From Convolutriloba macropyga (lineage: Eukaryota), in contig NC_134477.1 in NCBI RefSeq assembly GCF_964194025.1, positions 37,324,001 through 37,388,000 on the forward strand: a stretch of DNA of 64,000 nt, read 5' to 3'. Made by a program: the position numbers and the translations under genes. Shown here piece by piece: positions 1,090 through 10,520 of this stretch (its first letter is position 1; each line of letters starts with the position of its first letter). The notes below the pieces were generated by a model, which did no database searches, was not told where the DNA came from, and saw only the letters and a list, made by a program, of their open reading frames with translations.

Positions 1090-1640
1090 AAAAATGTTCA
1101 TTCTTGATTATGTCGAGACAAATTCTGCTAAACAGTAATTGCACATTTTCAACCAACTGAGCAATTTTGATTTATAAATGCAGCTTGAAGGTTTTTACAA
1201 TAAAAATAACTTCTTATCTCCAGGACATTTAAGTCTGAGGAGAAAACTCAATAATAAGTTATCTGACATACCAAAAAATGTTCATGCTTGATTATGTCGA
1301 GACAAATTCTGCTAAAAAATAATCACACATTTTCAACCAACAGAGCAATTTTGATTTATAAATGCAGCTTGAAGGTTTTTACAAAAAAAATAACTTCTTA
1401 TCTCCAGGACATTTAAGTCTGAGGAGAAAACTCAATAATAAGTTATCTGACATACCAAAAAATGTTCATGCTTGATTATGTCGAGACAAATTCTGCTAAA
1501 AAATAATCACACATTTTCAACCAACAGAGCAATATTGATTTATAAATGCAGCTTGAAGGTTTTTACAATAAAAATAACTTTTTATCTCGAGGACATTTAA
1601 GTCTGAGGAGAAAACTCAATAATAAGTGATCTGACTTACC
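1090..1640. repeat. Tandem repeat, 3 x 184 bp
   Basis: TGTCGAGACA recurs at 1111, 1295 and 1479 with near-identical surrounding sequence. Confidence 0.95.
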
Positions 1641-3714
1641 TCGAAGCTCAGACAGTTAATTATTTAATATTTAACTTTATCCTACAGTCAAACAAGACTT
1701 GTGAACTTAAGTAAGCCCTGTTTAACTTCATTTTAATTAGAAAACAAAAAAGATTTCCTTGAAAAACCTTCTCTTTATATTACTAATCGTTAGATTGTTA
1801 AAACAATAGCAATGACTCACTAAAAGGTATAGAACTTATGTATCAACAAAAGCTACTGTTGGCAGAAAAATTTGTAAACATCCAATTTCTGGTACCATTT
1901 CCTCGATTGGACACAAATACATTAACAGTTGAAAAACTTATCACTTCTATTTAACGATTCTTGGCTTCAATATGAAATTGGATGGGATCCTAATCGTCAG
2001 CACCCTTGATGTAAATTTTACATAATAATCCCAGCTGCACGGTTCGTCAGACGGAGTGGAGCCACGATGTCCGAAATCCGATTATAGTCAGTTAAATCTG
2101 ACACAACTCACAACCTTCTGAATTTCCGGTTTTTGATACATTAAGTTAATCCTATCAATTAGAACGGAAAGTGTTTTCCAAATTTCTTTCCAATTCTTTG
2201 ACGGTCATGTTTACTTTGCCTATTTTAATACTGCACTCAAAGTTTGATTGTGTTCGTGTACTCTCAGAATATGATTTTGTTGCTACCTTAGATTGAGATG
2301 ATTGACTTTGCTGCAGGAAGTAATAAAGCCATGTCGAACTACCTCTCCCAGCAAAAAAGCATTGACTCGAGTGATTGAGTCCAGCACCAATGCATGTTCG
2401 TCAGCAGAAGCAGATGATTATTTGTGAACGAAATTCTTCTGCAGCGAAAAGCATTTCTTTTATTGTTCTTAAAGTATAAAATCCCTTCAAAATGTTAATA
2501 CCAATGATTACAAAAATTTTGTCAAAATTAGTAGGAGTAGTAATAGTAATAATAATTATAAGTAATAAGTAAGAGAATCATTGTTTAAGACCGAAAAGAG
2601 AACCCAAAATGACTGGGAAAACCATTCGCAAATGACTGCTTTTTTTCCTCAAAAGAAGGAAACAAAACCAGCTTTCGCCGGCTACCAAGGATAGGGAAGA
2701 ATCGTAAAGATGACATTATCTGGAAAGAGCCTTGAGTTTATCTGGACTGGATTCCGTAAAGAGTTCATTGTGGAGGCAGCTCTAATTGGTGATTCCATTA
2801 TCCATATTATTCAATTCCTTTGACAGTCATATTTAATTACCTATTTTAATACTGCACTCTCAAAGCCATGTCAAACTACCTCTCCCGGCAAAAAGCATTG
2901 TCGCGAGTGATTTAGTCAAACACCAATGCATGTTCGTCAGCAGCTGGTTATTTCATTAGACTTCTTCTGTGAAAAGCAGTTATTTTAGTGCTGTTGTTCT
3001 TAAAGTACAGCCCCCCTCTAAATTGTTAATCTCAATAATTACAATTATTTCGTAGAAGTAAGTAGTAGTCGTAGTAGCAGTAGCTTAATGACTGGGAAAA
3101 CCATTCGCAAATGACTGCTTTTTTCCCTCAAAAGAAGGAAACAAAACCAGCTTTCGCCGGCTACCAAGGATAGGGAAGAATCGTAAAGATGACATTATCT
3201 GGAAAGAGCCTTGAGTTTATCTGGACTGGATTCCGTAAAGAGTTCATTGTGGAGGCTGCTCTAATTGGTGATTCCATTATCCATATTATTTAATTCCTTT
3301 GACAGTCATATTTAATTACCTATTTTAATACTGCACTCTCAAAGCCATGTCAAACTACCTCTCCCGGCAAAAAGCATTGTCGCGAGTGATTTAGTCAAAC
3401 ACCAATGCATGTTCGTCAGCAGCTGGATATTTCATTAGACTTCTTCTGTGAAAAGCAGTTATTTTAGTGCTGTTGTTCTTAAAGTACAGCCCCCTCTAAA
3501 TTGTTAATCTCAATAATTACAATTATTTCGTAGAAGTAAGTAGTAGTAGTAGTAGCAGTAGTAGTAATAATAAAAGCAATAGTTATTATTGTTTAAGACC
3601 AATACGAGAATCCAAAACGATAAGGCGAAACATTTGCAAATGACTGCTTTTTACTTCAAAAGAAGAACACAAAACCAGTTTTCTCTGGCTACCAAGAACA
3701 GAGGAATCGCAAAG

Positions 3715-3935
3715 ATGAAATCTGGAAAGAACCTTGAGTCTATGTGAACCGCAATCCGTAACGACTTCATTGTGGACACTGCTCTAAATGGCGATTCTAT
3801 TATAGACATCATCAGTGTGATTGGTGTACAAACTTACTCATTGTCAGGCGGCAAGGTGAGGGATATGTACGAACTCATGCCAACTCTGAAGTCTTACAAA
3901 AAGATCATTGTGTCGGAGGCAATAACCTCTCCTAC
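3715..3935 (+). pseudogene. SGNH/GDSL hydrolase-like gene, 5' half
   Basis: ALNGDSII...SLSGG...KIIVS; stop at ~3745 and truncated. Confidence 0.7.
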
Positions 3936-4058
3936 TTTAAAACCGAAACATGAATCCAAAACGAGTAGGCGAAAAATTCGCAAATGACTGCGTTTTACTT
4001 TAAAAGAAGAACAAAACCAGCTTTCTCCGGCTACCAAGAACAGGGAAGAATAGTAAAG

Positions 4059-4405
4059 ATGACATCATCTGAAAAGAGCCTTGATTTTATGTGGACTGCA
4101 TTCGTAACGAGTTCATTCCGGAAACTGCTCTAATCGGTAATTCCATTATAAATATTATCAGTGTAAACGGTGTACAAACTTACTCTTTGTCCGGTGGCAA
4201 GGCGAGGGGTATGCCAACTCTGAAGTCTTACAAAATGATCTTTGTTAGTGTCGGAGGCAATAACCTCTCCTATTTCAACGAACTTGGCCAGACTCCCGGT
4301 AGTGTGCATGAAGAGCTGAAAAATTTGGAAGCAACAATCAAGAAGCTGGATCAGAAGCTGGATGTAGTTTGCATCATTCTTCAATATTGTCCCATTTGTG
4401 TCTGA
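4059..4405 (+). pseudogene. SGNH/GDSL hydrolase-like gene, 3'-deleted
   Basis: ALIGNSII, SLSGG, VGGNN motifs; block V (DxxH) deleted. Confidence 0.7.
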
Positions 4406-5893
4406 TTTTGTTTGGTTAGATTTTGCCTAATTGTTTTTTCTTACTTATATTCCTGATTTAAAATTTTTTCGATAAAATTGACAATTTGTGTGTTGTCTGC
4501 TTTAGTCATTTATGGCATCGTACGGAACTCTCCTCCAATTTACTTCGCTTCTTGATTTGAATTCAATCAATTTTTGACTCTGTTTAAACGCTTTGTTAAA
4601 TGTAAACTTTAAAATATTTGTTGATATTTCAATTTAGAATTCTTAAATCGGAAACAGTGTTAGTCTTTACGCTTCGTTTTTGAGTCTTGTTGACTGAAAA
4701 ACCTTTCTGCGTTCTTGAAAACTAATAATTAGTTTTTTTGCCTTCCTGCAAAAGGTAGCATAACAAAACAATCCCAGCTGCACGAGTCGTTGCACGGAGG
4801 GAGGCCATGAGGTCCGAAATCCGATTTCAGTCAAATAAAGTCCTTTGACTATCATGTTTATTTTAACTATTTTAATACTGCACTCAAAGTTTGATTGTGT
4901 TCCTGTACTCTCAGAATATGATTTCGTTGCTACCTTAGATTGAGATGATTGACTTTGCTGCAGGCAGGAAGTAATAAAGCCATGTCGATCTACCTCTCCC
5001 AGCAAAAAAGCATTGACCCGAGTGATTGAGTCCAGCACCAATGCATGTTCGTCAGCAGAAGCAGATGATGATTTGTGTATGAAATTCTTCTGCAGCGAAA
5101 AGCATTTCTTTTATTGTTCTTAAAGTATATAACCCCTTCAAAATGTTAATACCAATGATTAGTAGGAGTAGTAATTGTCAAAATTAGTAGGAGTAGTAAT
5201 AGTAATAATAATTATAAGTAATAAGTAAGAGAATTATTGTTTAAGACCGAAAAGAGAACCCAAAATGACTGGGAAAACCATTCGCAAATGACTGCTTTTT
5301 TCCTCAAAAGAAGGAAACAAAACCAGCTTTCTCCGGCTACCAAGGATAGGGAAGAATCGTAAAGATGACATTATCTGGAAAGAGTCTTGAGTTTATCTGG
5401 ACTGGATTCCGTAAAGAGTTCATTGTGGACGCTGCTCTAATTGGTGATTCCATTATCCATATTATTCAATTCCTTTGACAGTCATATTTAATTACCTATT
5501 TTAATACTGCACTCTCAGAGCCATGTCAAATTACCTCTCCCAGCAAAAAGCATTGTCGCGAGTGATTTAGTCAAACACCAATGCATGTTCGTCAGCAGCA
5601 GCAGCTGGTTATTTCATTAGAATTCTTCTGTGAAAAGCAGTTACCTTAGTGCTGTTGTTCTTAAAGTACAGCCCCCCTCTAAATTGTTAATCTCAATAAT
5701 TACAATTATTTCGTCGAAGTAAGTAGTAGTAGTAGCAATAGTAGTAATAATAATAGCAATAGTATTATTGTTTAAGACCAATACGAGAATCCAAAAGGAG
5801 TAGGCGAAACATTTGCAAATGACTGCTTTTTACTTCAATAGAAGAACACAAAACCAGTTTTCTCTGGCTACCAAGAAGAGAGGAATCGTAAAG

Positions 5894-6587: not shown

Positions 6588-7380
6588 TTTTGTTTGGTTA
6601 GATTTTGCGTAATTGTTTTTTTTTTTACTTACATTCCTGTTTTCAAATTTCTTCGATAAAATTGACAATTTGTGTGTTGTCTGCTTTAGTCATTTATGGC
6701 ATTGTACGGAACTGTCCTGCAATTTACTTCGCTTCTTGATTTGAATTCAATCAATTTTTGGCTCTGTTTAAATGTTTTTTAAATGTAGAACTTTAAAATG
6801 TTTGTTGATATTTCAATTTAGAATTCTTAAATCGGTAACAGTGTTAGTCTTTACGCTTCGTTTTTGAGTCTTGTTGACTGAAAGACCTTTCTGCGTTCTT
6901 AAAAACTAATAATTAGTTTTTTTTGCCTTCTTGCAAAAGGTAGCATAACAAAACAATCCCTGCTGCACGAGTCGTTTCACGGAGGGAGGCCATGAGGTCC
7001 GATATCCGATATCAGTCAAATAAAGTCCTTTGACTATCATGTTCACTTTAACTATTTTAATACTGCACTCAAAGTTTGATTGTGTTCCTGTACTTTCAGA
7101 ATATGATTTTGTTGCTACCTTAGATTGAGATGATTGAACCTGCTGCAGAAGGTAATGAAGCATTGTCCAACTACCTCTCCCAGCAAAAAGCAGTGACGCG
7201 AGTGATTGAGTCAAACACCAATGCATTTTCCTCAGCAGAAGCAGGCGATTATTTATTTAGAATTCTTCTGCTGTGAAAGGCAGTTGTTTTAGTGGTGTTG
7301 GTCTTACAGTATAGCCCTCTTTAAATGTTAATACCAATAATTACAATTATTTTGTCAAAATAGGTAATAGTAGTAGTAAA

Positions 7381-10370
7381 CAAAAATGGGGGGGGGGGCA
7401 AAATCCATCCTCACTTCCACGTGGTGCCCCTGTGGTAAGCGTTTTGGCGCTCAGTCCCTAAGCTGAGCTAACGAGGCAATGGTTCTCTAGTTGGTGGCGC
7501 GACTAATTGTATTATAGCCAACAACCCTATAACAAGATTCCAACTGATGAGAAAGACCCCGAGTCCCGGGCAAGGGGTGCTAAGAATCTCACGCGGAATG
7601 GACGCTTGCTCATGCTGGTTGTCTGCAGACTCTTAAAATGGACTTAGCAAAGTACGAGCAAAGTACGATTCAAGAAACCAGACATGACGAACAGGAGATT
7701 GACCTTCGAACGCACAAACTTTTCTTGACCAACTCACTTAGTTCCTCCAATCGTTCCAAGCAAGCAGGTGTGGGTATTTTTGTTAAGAAGACACTGCTTG
7801 GCTGCATAATCGCAAATGTGACTGAATGAACGCTTGTGCTACTTCAAATTTGCTTGCTGTGCAACAAAGAACAAATTTGATTGTCATTGTGTGTTATGCG
7901 CCGACAAATGAAGCGGATATTCAAACAAAGGAAGATTTTTGGAACACACTAACAAGTTTGACACACCACTTCAGAGGAAGGGACGCAACTGTCTTATTGG
8001 AGACTCCAATGCAGAGCCGGAAGTAATAAAGAGAGCGAACATCTATGCATTGGCCCTTTTGGTTTTGGCGAAGAGAACGATAACACAAAAACTTCTGGGT
8101 CTGTGTGACGCAAACCAACTTCTGATTGGAGGAACATAGGTTTGTCGCCGTTTTATGCATAGTTACACCTTCAACCGTCCGGACAAAAAATGTCGGAAGA
8201 GAATGTTGAATTATGTATTGCTCTCAATCGCAGTTGTCAGAACCAGAAGGGGAAATTTAATTTGAATGACCATGAATTATTAACAGCACATTTAGATCTT
8301 AAACTGCAGAACTCTCAACTTCGTAAACCTGCGAAAATTAACCCGACGAAATTGCATGACGAAGTGGATCGAAACAAGTTCAACGAACTAGTGAACAGAA
8401 AATTGCACGAGACGGAGGACATTAACGACGTTGAACAATCATGGCTCATCTTTCGCAGTGCTCTTAACGAAGCTGCCTCAAAGATTCTTGTCCAGGATAG
8501 AACAGAACAAGCCTTCGATATCTAAAGAGACAGTCGATCTGATAAAGAGAGGCAAGTTGCAGTTAAAAAAAACTCAAGCAAAGCGGAGGCTTTGTCTGAG
8601 ACCAATTTGAAGAGAAACCAACTATAAACCGCACTAAATTTAACAAAGCGGAGGCTTTGTTAGAATTTGATGACTGCTTCAAACTTGTGCCAAAAAGCTG
8701 TGCGGGCGGATAGAAGAAAATGGCTCAATGAAAAGGGTACTCTGGTTCAAGAATTTGCTGATAAAGGTCGCATCAAATAAATGTTTGGCGAAACAAAGCT
8801 TGTTTGCAGAAAGTCGTGTCCACAAACAACAAAGCCCACGTCTAAAGATGGCCAAGTGCTAGGAAAGTGCTTTGACGTCAGAGCTGGAGTTCGTCAAGGT
8901 GACGTATGGTCTCCATTCCTGTTTGGACTTGTCATCAATTAAGTTTTGGCAAACTCGGTGCGTGGTGAAATAGACATTGGCCAAAATGTTGCGGACCTTG
9001 ACTTTGCTGATGATGTTGCCCTTGTGGGAAATTGTGATCCGGATGTTGAGAACCTACATAAGATTTAAAAAACTGCTCAGGTTGGTCTCCTGATTAACGT
9101 TAGCAAGACCAAAAACAGGGGAGTATCGTTTCAACACCCGATGGCCTCAACATCAGCATAGCAAAATCAAGTCGAGATTATAACAGGATGTTATAAAGGA
9201 CAAACTGGATTCCTCGGGTAGATAGACAAAGTCTGGAGTTTATCCATTGGCACGGAGGTGCTCAAGGGAAAAAAGAAAAAAAGCAAGCTGGTTTGAAAGG
9301 AGACAAGATCCGTTTAAAACATTTGAAATGCAAGACCATGTCACAATGGACCACCGGAACCTACCAACGAATCAAAAGTATGCTCGAAGTTTGAGCGCTG
9401 TTTTGATACTGTGGTTGGACGAAAAGGACACGAGTCAAGATATTGCAAGAAAGCTGATGCAAACAAAACCTCAGTTAGTGAAACCCATTGGTGCAAAGTT
9501 CAAAAACCTTGAAAAGAGCTTAAGATGGAATAGATGCGAACAAAAATTAAAATCTGTTAACGGTCGAAAAGCACATGAAGCGAGATATTGCGGTAAACTG
9601 AAAGCCAGAGCTAATAAAAGTTTTTCTAGCAGTGTAAAGGACGCTTCGGGTACCGGATTTGAGAGCGTTCATGCATTCAAGTTTCTACGTCAATTTACAG
9701 GACCGGTGATGCAAAAGAAATTATCTGTAAATTGGCTGAAGGTGGACAACGCTTCAGAACATCTGGAAAAACAAACAATTAGCGACAGCATTGAAAAGCA
9801 AGCTTTACAGAGCGTTCACCTTGACAGCGGTGTTGTACAGCTCAGAGACACGGACGATAAACAAAGCGTTGGAGAAAACACTTGATAGCTTTCACTTCAA
9901 CTGCCTACGTCGTATACTTTGTTTGTCTTACATGACGAAAATAACAGTCTGTGCTCAACAAAACACAGATGCCAGCTATATCAAAAAGTATCATGATTAG
10001 ACGCTTTAAATGGTTTGGACACGTCCAAAGAATGGAGAGCGACAGACTGCCAAGGAAAGCTCTGGAATGGAACCCCACTGAGCATTATCCAAACGCCGTG
10101 AAAGCTGTCGGAGGACAGCGAGAGTTACGGCTAGATCAACTGCAAAACGATTGCAAAGGAAATAAGATAGATTTCTCAGTGGTTCAAGTAAGAGCTTATA
10201 GCAATTCGAGATCAGTCTTCAAAAAATTCGTCAATGAAAAGTTTCTTGCTTAACTAATAACTTGATGCTGATTTAATTTAATGATTGCTACATTTATATT
10301 CTTGCCCTAAATCCATGCTTGATTGTCTTGTAATAGTGTCTTTAGTTCTTAGTGGGATTCAAGTTGTATC
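7381..10370 (+). mobile_element. RTE-like non-LTR retrotransposon, internally deleted and decayed
   Basis: APE endonuclease motifs (IQETR, AGVGIFV, CYAPTNEAD, LIGDSNA, DHELL); RT motifs GVRQGDVWSPFLF, DLDFADDVAL (FADD at 9003), GLLINVSKTK; RTE C-terminus KSKLYRAF..VLYSSET..CLRRIL..RRFKWFGHVQRM; candidate TSD AGTAGTAAA at 7372-7380 and 10371-10379; N-terminal RT half lost at ~8860. Confidence 0.9.
7392..7482 (+). ncRNA. Candidate HDV-like self-cleaving ribozyme at the LINE 5' end
   Basis: P1 GGGGGC/GCCCCT, P2 CCAT-CCTC/GAGG-(CA)-ATGG, P3 ACT/GGT, L3 TCCACGT, P4 hairpins, J4/2 GCTAA with putative catalytic C7468. Confidence 0.6.
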
Positions 10371-10520
10371 AGTAGTAAAAATAATAATAGTAATAAGTAA
10401 CAGTATTATTGTTTAAGACCGGGACTGGACGAACCATTCGCAAATGACTGCTTCTTACCTCAAAAGAAGAAAACAAAACCAGCTTCCTCCGGCTACCAAG
10501 AACAGGGAAGAATAGTAAAG

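Follow-up and report, generated by a model that had tools for sequence, protein, structure and literature searches.

A decayed candidate HDV-like ribozyme at the head of an abundant RTE-type element family in the acoel Convolutriloba macropyga

A 95-base stretch in a 64,000-nucleotide window of the Convolutriloba macropyga genome (contig NC_134477.1, positions 37,324,001 to 37,388,000 of RefSeq assembly GCF_964194025.1; hereafter, the window) is described here as a worn copy of an HDV-like ribozyme that heads an abundant family of RTE-type elements. Positions 7394-7482 are probably what remains of a genuine HDV-like self-cleaving ribozyme, which occupies the initial ~92-120 nt of RTE-type LINEs in this genome. 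The original prediction had placed such a ribozyme at the 5' end of an RTE LINE, and matches of family copies to Rfam HDV models, exchange of the P4 stem around a retained core, and compensatory changes in P1 all argue for it. The window copy itself is probably weak or inactive, judging from its sequence, since its P1 has 6 bp, a single P1.1 pair is left, and P4 is damaged.

Fold and decay of the window copy

All of the pairings originally named (P1, P2 with its extension, and P3) are present at 7394-7482 (Table 1), and they follow the nested double-pseudoknot order P1-5', P2-5', P3-5', L3, P3-3', P1-3', J1/4, P4 hairpin, J4/2, P2-3' that is found in both the window and the family. Cleavage is predicted 5' of G7394, with a register that is ambiguous inside the G run. 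The extra Gs upstream of this site probably reflect slippage at the 5' junction or the addition of non-templated bases there; copies L013, L022, L079, and L086 have the same poly-G extension.

Table 1. Coordinates of the ribozyme copy and its host element in the window.
Feature	Position	Strand	Sequence and remarks
Relic of upstream (GTA)n microsatellite	7364-7378	+	GTAATAGTAGTAGTA, then AACAAAAAT; pure (GTA)n adjoins the element in sister copies
G run extra to family	7388-7393	+	11 Gs in total vs 6 in family
P1 5' strand	7394-7399	+	GGGGGC; pairs with 7426-7431; 6 bp; G.U at predicted cleavage end
J1/2	7400-7404	+	AAAAT; invariant across all lineages
P2 5' strand	7405-7412	+	CCATCCTC; CCTC 7409-7412/GAGG 7473-7476; CCAT 7405-7408/ATGG 7479-7482
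P3 and L3	7413-7425	+	P3 ACT/GGT, 7413-7415/7423-7425, one U.G pair; L3 TCCACGT, 7416-7422
P1 3' strand	7426-7431	+	GCCCCT; one T lost vs family GTCCCCT (alignment to model R1, built here)
J1/4	7432-7435	+	GTGG; family GGGG, second G is T here
P4 domain, damaged	7436-7464	+	Family-A hairpin AGC-g-UUGCGGGGC/GUCCCGUAA-GCU altered at three sites
GAGC-TAAC, with J4/2	7465-7472	+	J4/2 CUAAC; C7468 candidate catalytic cytosine (C75 equivalent); invariant in all lineages
P2 3' strand	7473-7482	+	GAGG-ca-ATGG
Short hairpin just 3' of ribozyme	7486-7507	+	Family CTAGT...ACTAG, window ACTAA; conserved
Degenerate LINE coding region	7537-10244	+	blastx: residues 1-436 and 677-1164 of sister 1166-aa APE+RT frame
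Short 3' UTR	10245-10370	+	Ends ...caagttgtatca; homologous to family 3' end ...aaagtgttgaaaca preceding (GTA)n
Degenerate (GTA/ATA)n tail	10371-10411	+	

The search for an HDV fold that had been proposed as a check came out in favor of the assignment. A descriptor written for this analysis (L3 motif, 3-bp P3, a P1 of 6-7 bp beginning with G, CNAA, and a 4-bp P2) was applied to the window on both strands and gave exactly one match, at 7394-7476. Eight matches arose in 200 dinucleotide shuffles, or an expectation of ~0.04 per window. Positions 7393-7482 also aligned over their full length with two HDV-like Rfam families at sub-threshold scores (~13 bits each, E ~5), and a scan of the whole window yielded no Rfam family at its gathering score.

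The caution that this copy might be a variant or decayed was well placed. The family P1 comprises 7 bp (GGGGG(G/A)C with GTCCCCT, closed by G1.U), and the window P1 comprises 6 because of the T missing from its 3' strand. The first two Gs of the family J1/4 pair with the CC of L3 to form P1.1, which belongs to the HDV active site; both pairs are present in copies of lineages A-D (GG), whereas the altered J1/4 of the window copy (GU) has lost one of them, and the descriptor no longer matches this copy when P1.1 is required. The family P3 is ACC/GGT, as against ACU/GGU here. The extra C in J4/2, in contrast, is not a sign of decay: CUAAC is invariant across the four lineages, and identical letters stand at this place in the drz-Agam-1 model. 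A P4 hairpin of the form GCTCAG/CTGAGC was rejected for the family; it would pair the candidate catalytic C, and the lowest-energy folds of lineages A, B, and C leave GAGC unpaired, as does lineage D when its sequence is read by eye.

The 7394-7482 copy might still be active as a CPEB3-like variant whose 6-bp P1 tolerates a one-pair P1.1, although this is unlikely. The CPEB3 ribozyme is active with a 6-bp P1 stem that the window P1 (GGGGGC/GCCCCU) resembles; P1 is intact at this length, as are P2, P3, L3, and J4/2, and the L3 sequence is the one carried by the highly successful lineage C. Moreover, HDV-like ribozymes with a 6-bp P1 and helix mismatches have been described as active (PMC3774820). 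What weighs against activity is that a U-C clash stands in place of the second P1.1 pair, that the family-A P4 has undergone three damaging changes, and that the lowest-energy local fold of this P4 region is a competing hairpin that pairs C7468. In addition, the copy is ~82% identical to its nearest relatives, its host element is dead (frameshifts, 0.7-kb deletion), and there has been no selection for ribozyme activity since insertion.

Copies, boundaries, and lineages in the genome

The genome contains at least 670 exact copies of a 28-nt ribozyme core pattern, with none in a reversed control, and the junction of GTAGT with GGGGGACAAAATCCA was found 505 times. Full-length elements begin at the G of the predicted cleavage site, usually directly after (GTA)n. 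Homology among copies begins at the G run that follows (GTA)n in either phase (ending in GT or in GTA), and in lineage D it begins after unrelated flanks. One array consists of five head-to-tail units, each made up of ribozyme, ORF, and (GTA)32-124. Several full-length copies in arrays carry long open frames. A huge k-mer depth was recorded in five public RNA runs (contigs, of unknown library type and without read starts).

Four lineages, A to D, were distinguished, whose APE domains are 24-55% identical and whose near-invariant core surrounds four unrelated P4 hairpins. A comparison of 5' ends had been suggested as a check on the fold, and the pairings are indeed conserved in sister copies: 93% of the cells in the family alignment are paired, versus 38-58% with slid partners, and P1 is fully paired in eight of eight representatives. 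Lineages A, B, and C, whose proteins are ~45-60% identical, form a mosaic in which identity is 84-95% in the core, 25-39% in P4, which is unalignable, and 59-65% over the following 1 kb, with conserved blocks flanking P4 on both sides. The P4 regions of these three lineages each fold as a hairpin (-14 to -25 kcal/mol; z of -3.3, -4.6, and, for C, only -1.3) that leaves GAGC-UAAC free, and the P4 hairpin of lineage D was read by eye from its sequence. Within the core, three L3 variants occur (TCCCCGT, TCCACGT, and TCCTCGT); lineages A, C, and D combine ACC/GGT with UCC(C/A/U)CGU, and the outer pair of P3 is mismatched in lineage B. In P2, CCTC/GAGG and the outer CC/GG are conserved across lineages, and the middle AT/AT pairs are confined to lineage A, outside of which they have no support. 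The hairpin segment just 3' of the ribozyme is 60-82% identical between subfamilies.

Covariation, which that comparison of 5' ends was meant to reveal, was found between lineages and was not significant among close copies. In lineage D, whose APE domain is 24% identical, three adjacent pairs of P1 have undergone compensatory changes (G-C to A-U, G.U/A-U to C-G, and C-G to U-A), giving a covariation score of 0.195 versus 0.107 in shuffles that was reached by 0 of 500 shuffles, with all three covariations lying on one branch (A/B/C versus D). Among 28 close copies, two compensatory pairs were observed, a number reached by 56 of 500 shuffles, because most of the differences between such copies represent post-insertion decay. 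Position 6 of P1 is G or A, both of which pair with U, and is T in only eight copies and C in none.

A family-A copy (L003:1499-1590) aligns with RF00094 over its entire length (38.3 bits; E 1.9e-4 when 201 nt are searched and 0.009 when 9.8 kb are searched) and also matches the drz-agam-1 and HDV-F-prausnitzii models; no other Rfam families matched there. The best scores lie below gathering in each case (RF00094, 38.3 of 50 bits; RF01787, 26.9 of 37; RF02682, 23.2 of 44). It should be noted that the HDV-type models of Rfam do not score the pseudoknot and that the RF00094 seeds are viral. GCUAA aligns with the HDV GGCuAA in the RF00094 alignment. A search of the whole genome with RF00094 gave no match at E<=10, since a score of 38 bits does not reach significance in a search space of 1.18 Gb.

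The conserved 5' block could instead be some other element of the 5' UTR (an internal promoter, a packaging signal, or a site at which translation starts or RT binds) with a fortuitous fit to HDV, but this is quite improbable. The core is conserved mostly as sequence, with few variable pairs, the Rfam scores fall short of gathering, and the literature describes HDV-like 5' ends that double as a translation-initiation element and, in L1Tc, overlap the promoter. Nevertheless, three independent HDV-family covariance models are the sole matches and align end to end, and the conserved letters are those that define the HDV active site (G1.U, L3 CC with J1/4 GG, and the C-U-A-A of J4/2). P4 has been freely replaced yet forms a hairpin in every lineage, three pairs of P1 covary, and copies of the element start at the predicted scissile bond. 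A second function of the block would add to the ribozyme role rather than replace it. A chance resemblance limited to the window and devoid of biological meaning is scarcely credible, for although the loose descriptor occasionally matches random sequence (7 of 200 shuffled windows contained at least one match) and the Rfam E-value of the window copy alone is ~5, hundreds of homologous copies have, at the corresponding place in the element, a fold that equals or surpasses that of the window copy.

The host element and known ribozyme-headed elements

The HDV-like ribozyme copy of the window heads a dead RTE-type LINE (~7388-10370) with frameshifts and an internal deletion of ~0.7 kb; its coding region matches the sister frame in several reading frames and lacks ~240 codons, including the N-terminal half of the RT. 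A target-site duplication had been proposed, and the shared AGTAGTAAA is indeed present at 7372-7380 and 10371-10379, but it lies within the (GTA)n relics and is thus indistinguishable from microsatellite remains. Short ORFs of the window copy gave no Pfam match, and the element was therefore typed through its sister copies. One of these encodes 1166 aa in a single open frame, in which Exo_endo_phos spans 40-257, RVT_1 spans 567-778, and DUF6451 matches weakly; this is an architecture of an N-terminal APE endonuclease and RT in one ORF with no ORF1. The family 3' UTR of ~125 nt is followed by a (GTA)n tail, a trait of the RTE clade, in which a very short 3' UTR ends in simple-sequence repeats (Tay et al., 2010, PMC2887409). 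These features support assignment of the element to APE+RT, single-ORF, SSR-tailed LINEs of the RTE type.

Hundreds of ~1000-aa homologs with APE, RVT_1, and DUF6451 are encoded on ~3.3-kb contigs (E ~1e-160). Named homologs comprise Schistosoma proteins, which are the closest (~34% identical, E ~1e-157), and 'craniofacial development protein 2'. At one Schistosoma homolog locus, a twister-P1 match (53.7 bits) ends ~125 nt before the ORF, and we infer that the Schistosoma homologs are Perere-3, an RTE-clade element that has a twister variant in the slot equivalent to that of the HDV-like ribozyme here (PMC8501958). The two share a similar distance from ribozyme to AUG and a short-repeat 3' tail, and insertion of Perere-3 is not site-specific. 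Five distant marine-metagenome RTE relatives (L072-L075, L077) gave no HDV-like match with Rfam or model R1. Another relative (P0089, 47% identity) yielded nothing but copies truncated at the 5' end, which lie between (TAG)n arrays of ~750 bp.

The ribozymes of the RTE clade, and drz-Agam-1 with them, are reportedly to be credited to Webb 2009 and Ruminski 2011. Two reviews place HDV-like examples at the 5' ends of RTE-clade LINEs, with drz-Agam-1 (RF01787) coming from Anopheles gambiae, and call elements headed in this way promoter-less (PMC6765202, PMC3774820). drz-Agam-1 and the Convolutriloba ribozyme are alike in fold and in location, each heading an APE+RT single-ORF element from its very first nucleotides, and the sequence likeness of the model to the family is striking (AAAAUCC, ACCUCCnCGUGGUGUC, and CUAAC before P2), with AAAAU-CC common to the model and the J1/2 of the window family. 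The differences lie in the host, an acoel and so of another phylum, in scores of 20-27 bits against a gathering score of 37, and in the P4 sequences. The Convolutriloba elements sit in (GTA)n and form head-to-tail arrays, which may set them apart from the mosquito elements.

Dong, of the R4 clade in Bombyx mori, belongs to another LINE clade and has a restriction-like endonuclease, unlike the APE type of the Convolutriloba element; the trinucleotide microsatellite upstream is (TAA)n in Dong and (GTA)n here. The Dong ribozyme cleaves at the repeat/element junction, freeing a 21-nt (UAA)7 leader, and the Dong 5' end as printed is laid out alike, with a 7-nt P1 strand followed by AAAAU-CC (PMC3774820). 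Cleavage is shown for Dong and predicted for Convolutriloba. In R2, an HDV-like ribozyme processes the element out of a co-transcript and sets its 5' end, and a role in aiding translation of the uncapped RNA has been proposed. R2 inserts only in 28S rDNA and is transcribed by Pol I; in many species the R2 ribozyme cleaves upstream of the junction, whereas the cut predicted here falls at the junction. The HDV genomic/antigenomic ribozyme (RF00094) and the mammalian CPEB3 ribozyme share with the family the double pseudoknot, the closing G1.U pair, the L3-J1/4 P1.1, and a catalytic C followed by NAA. Their contexts differ, the former lying in the rolling-circle genome of a virus and the latter in an intron of mammals. 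L3 has 7 nt here versus 8 in HDV, and J4/2 has one nucleotide more here.

Proposed processing and significance

The fold, its pattern of conservation, the 5' boundary, and the organization in arrays were observed directly; for the processing of the element, co-transcription, cleavage, and use of the cleaved RNA are steps that we infer. The element would be transcribed within a longer RNA, arising either from host transcription or from an upstream array copy, placed head to tail, whose transcription reads through, and the nested double pseudoknot (P1, P1.1, P2, P3, P4) would fold in that transcript. The J4/2 cytosine (C7468 in the window copy), together with Mg2+, could then cleave the backbone just 5' of G1, yielding an element RNA that begins exactly at the first element base. 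Such an RNA would be translated and then reverse-transcribed into (GTA)n targets by way of its (GUA)n tail.

A more speculative extension, which we consider possible but doubtful, is that in arrays the ribozyme defines both ends of a unit. The same cut that frees the 5' end of one unit would leave the upstream unit with a 3' end of the form ...(GUA)nGU carrying a 2',3'-cyclic phosphate, and this tail could serve as a primer on (TAC)n targets or as an acceptor for template jumps. If true, this would explain how promoter-less copies home into the (GTA)n tails of one another, the 505 GTAGT-G junctions, and the build-up of arrays of full-length copies, and an autonomous LINE would have a self-sustaining cycle from array to transcript to monomer. 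Separately, and as tentatively, the ribozyme may be a mobile module that passes from one LINE lineage to another, given that the same core, with compensated P1 changes, heads a lineage whose APE is just 24% identical.

RTE, R2, R4/Dong, and L1Tc elements were previously known to carry HDV-like ribozymes, and the Convolutriloba case is thus an added member of a known arrangement and a further example rather than a new mechanism. A literature search on ribozymes in acoels found nothing relevant, and the ribozyme-headed RTE arrangement is here extended to an acoel (Xenacoelomorpha). The window itself is ordinary, holding a dead copy. For annotation, the family accounts for many (GTA)n arrays and for the sharp 5' ends of the repeat. 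The family also offers an unusually clean natural system: its young copies are almost identical and number in the hundreds, its four lineages have swapped their P4 stems and show compensation in P1, its tie to one microsatellite is strict, and its tandem arrays could supply the co-transcripts that such promoter-less elements need.

The candidate fold in the window copy

The original prediction placed an HDV-like ribozyme, with nested P1, P2, P3 and L3 elements, at the 5' end of an RTE-type LINE. That pseudoknot layout is present in the sequence, and its site is the single match in both strands of the 64-kb window to a descriptor combining the L3 motif, a 3-bp P3, a P1 of 6-7 bp whose first base is G, the CNAA motif and a P2 of 4 bp. 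The same descriptor returned 8 matches in 200 dinucleotide shuffles of the window, a chance level of about 0.04 per window. No match in the window was obtained with Rfam at gathering thresholds. A permissive Rfam scan of 7300-7600 gave four weak matches, two of them end-to-end to HDV-type families; the copy scored 13.2 bits with drz-agam-1 and 13.1 bits with HDV-F-prausnitzii, and of these alignments one model scores P2 and P3 and the other P1 and P3. Because scores of about 13 bits fall below gathering, the window copy taken alone is suggestive of an HDV-like ribozyme but not compelling.

Positions of ribozyme features in the window copy and of the lineage D ribozymes
Feature	Sequence	Position	Strand	Remark
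Relic repeat	(GTA)n	7364-7378		upstream of ribozyme, followed by A-rich spacer
G run	11 Gs	7388-7398		
P1	GGGGGC / GCCCCT	7394-7399 / 7426-7431		
J1/2	AAAAT	7400-7404		
P2	CCATCCTC / GAGG-ca-ATGG	7405-7412 / 7473-7482		
P3	ACT / GGT	7413-7415 / 7423-7425		
L3	TCCACGT	7416-7422		
J1/4	GTGG	7432-7435		
P4 region		7436-7464		
Catalytic region	GAGC-TAAC	7465-7472		candidate catalytic C at 7468
Lineage D ribozymes		~1413-1532 of each locus	minus	extracted loci L079, L082, L084, L091

The prediction had also cautioned that this might be a variant or decayed copy, and comparison with family A bears this out. Extra Gs are found at the 5' junction; P1 is down from 7 to 6 bp through loss of one T from its 3' strand; P3 has a C-to-T substitution that retains a wobble pair; a G-to-T change in J1/4 costs one of two P1.1 pairs; and P4 carries three changes that make a fold pairing C7468 the best local one. 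The L3 is of the lineage C form, though the copy is assigned to lineage A, and its nearest relatives in a DNA search of the genome are about 82% identical. With P1 shortened, P1.1 reduced and P4 damaged, the window copy is judged to be a weak or inactive ribozyme, and it is unlikely that it still cleaves.

Copies, 5' boundary and (GTA)n context

A search of the genome with window positions 7388-7700 recovered at least 918 family candidates; the full-length ones almost all align from query base 6-7 onward, equivalent to window position 7393/7394. In extracted junctions, homology among copies begins at the G run, with (GTA)n directly upstream in almost every copy. Genome-wide, there are 670 occurrences of a 28-nt core pattern spanning the P2 end to J1/4 (reversed control, 0) and 505 of the exact junction of GTAGT with GGGGGACAAAATCCA. 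At the junction the repeat ends in either of two phases (GT or GTA), and 5'-truncated copies likewise adjoin (GTA)n, which argues that the upstream repeat is target or tail sequence, not a fixed 5' end, and that the full-length element starts at G1, the first base after the predicted cleavage site. The HDV-like interpretation is thus supported by the fold, by conservation in the family and by element starts at the predicted scissile bond, with cleavage itself being predicted.

At many loci, the 3' UTR of another copy precedes the upstream (GTA)n. On contig G000:C1 of the same genome (16379000-16398900, minus strand; loci L070 and L071), five full-length RTE units are arranged head to tail, each consisting of a ribozyme, an ORF of ~860-1180 aa and pure (GTA)32-124. 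The 100% purity of these repeats suggests that the array was very recently active.

Several further repeats were observed. (TAG)n arrays of ~250 units each lie between 5'-truncated RTE copies at locus L067 (1405-2137, 5174-5934 and 8604-9354), and the RTE family seems to contribute heavily to this genome's long GTA microsatellites, as either their source or their sink. Directly after a ~760-bp (TAG)n array, L067:5935-6200 holds a GC-rich, visibly self-complementary segment of ~250 nt that starts TCAGAAAAGGACG. It has no relation to the RTE 5' end and could be a further small retroposon with the same microsatellite target. At L030:546-693, (GTA)n adjoins inverted (TAC)n to form a perfect long hairpin; several miRNA and Y RNA families of Rfam match it spuriously, an annotation trap. 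In the window, (GTA)12 and degenerate AGTA-type repeats at 3530-3566 and 5161-5237, upstream of the element, could be left over from other insertions or represent tails of this RTE family. Summed k-mer depth on L030:1466-2700 was 10,000-260,000 in ~1-Gb public contig runs of unknown library type, which would mean very high copy number if the runs are DNA and very high expression if they are RNA.

The LINE lineages and conservation of the ribozyme

The window element extends from ~7388 to 10370, with a degenerate (GTA/ATA)n tail continuing to 10411; its own ORFs are short and have no Pfam match. Products of sister copies carry Exo_endo_phos followed by RVT_1; an open 1166-aa frame in one array member carries Exo_endo_phos (40-257), RVT_1 (567-778) and a weak DUF6451 match, and its AUG is 151 nt downstream of the predicted cleavage site. 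In a blastx comparison of 7300-10500 with this frame, residues 1-436 and 677-1164 were matched in several reading frames; with these frameshifts and ~240 codons missing, the element is dead. Homologs of the 1166-aa protein number in the hundreds (~1000 aa, same three Pfam families, on ~3.3-kb contigs, E ~1e-160); among the few with names are Schistosoma proteins and a 'craniofacial development protein 2', and a protein belonging to this family is annotated in Convolutriloba macropyga. The family element shares the architecture described for RTE elements, which have a single APE+RT ORF and a very short 3' UTR closed by simple repeats (PMC2887409), and is classed as RTE-type on this architecture.

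Three RTE lineages, A (including the window copy), B and C, were told apart, with proteins of roughly 45-60% mutual identity. Nucleotide identity between them is 84-93% from P1 through J1/4, 25-39% (unalignable) in P4, 90-95% in GAGC-UAAC-P2' and 59-65% in the next 1 kb after the ribozyme. Since conserved blocks flank the diverged P4 on both sides, simple exchange of 5' ends among the lineages cannot account for this mosaic. The P4 sequences of all three fold as hairpins in a common frame, GGGG-UA-[hairpin]-GAGC-UAAC, at -16.4 kcal/mol (z -3.3) in A, -25.1 kcal/mol (z -4.6) in B and -14.1 kcal/mol (z -1.3) in C; the z-score of C does not stand out from shuffled sequence, and the P4 argument is therefore carried by A, B and the shared frame. 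A clean family-A copy aligned end-to-end to the Rfam HDV_ribozyme model at 38.3 bits (E 1.9e-4 in a 201-nt scan, 0.009 in 9.8 kb), with the C of GAGC-UAA aligned to the HDV catalytic C; at that place it also matched drz-agam-1 and HDV-F-prausnitzii, and no other families.

A distant fourth lineage, D, was found by seeking copies in which P1 position 7 is not C. It comprises about 6 copies with the same ribozyme core, heading a different LINE whose APE shares just 24% identity with the lineage C one. Its L3 is the canonical UCCUCGU, its P4 is a fourth, unrelated sequence that reads by eye as a long hairpin, and its insertion sites are unrelated and outside (GTA)n; here too, homology begins at the G run. 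The prediction called for covariation in sister 5' ends, and lineage D supplies it in P1: GGGGACT/AGTCCCT versus GGGGG(G/A)C/GTCCCCT elsewhere amounts to three adjacent compensatory pair changes, all on one branch of the tree. Across eight representatives, P1 is 100% paired, and the overall covariation score is 0.195 versus 0.107 in shuffles, none of 500 reaching the observed value. Slid partners pair at only 38-58%. Covariation among 28 close copies was not significant, as expected if neutral decay accounts for most of what sets them apart. Support for the middle of P2 comes from lineage A only, and the outer P3 pair is mismatched in lineage B. The ribozyme may have been exchanged between LINE lineages as a module.

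Other features of these LINEs were noted. The lineage D LINE has a Cys-rich N-terminal segment. The long open frame of lineage A (e.g., locus L031 from 448 onward) has no in-frame AUG near its start, whereas in lineage C an in-frame AUG is found 151 nt from G1; the absence of an early AUG brings to mind suggestions that ribozyme-capped LINE RNAs use non-canonical initiation. A short hairpin, CTAGT...ACTAG, lies just 3' of the ribozyme (window 7486-7507) at the same place in all RTE lineages, in a segment 60-82% conserved between lineages, above the downstream coding sequence; it could serve in protein binding or in translation.

Proposed mechanism and relation to known systems

To the observed fold, conservation pattern, copy starts at the predicted scissile bond, (GTA)n context and head-to-tail arrays, a mechanism can be added from the known behavior of HDV-like ribozymes on R2, R4/Dong, RTE and L1Tc elements. 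Transcription would come in from upstream of the element, the ribozyme would cleave 5' of G1, the resulting 5'-OH RNA would act as mRNA and template, and its (GUA)n tail would pair with (TAC)n targets in target-primed reverse transcription. The closest precedent for the microsatellite context is Dong, which lies behind (TAA)n and has a ribozyme demonstrated to cleave where repeat and element meet (PMC3774820); its 5' end has the same layout of 7-nt P1, AAAAU and CC.

The window copy is best supported as a further HDV-like ribozyme at a LINE 5' end, an already-known arrangement, within a dead element. Near the closest named protein homolog, on a Schistosoma curassoni chromosome, a type-P1 twister match (L076:1308-1377; 53.7 bits, E 1.4e-9, below the gathering threshold of 67.2) ends ~125 nt before the ORF (1501-4521), in agreement with the published association of Perere-3 with twister (PMC8501958). 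In this relative, a twister would occupy the slot that an HDV-like ribozyme fills in the family described here, suggesting that related LINEs fill the 5' slot with different ribozyme classes.
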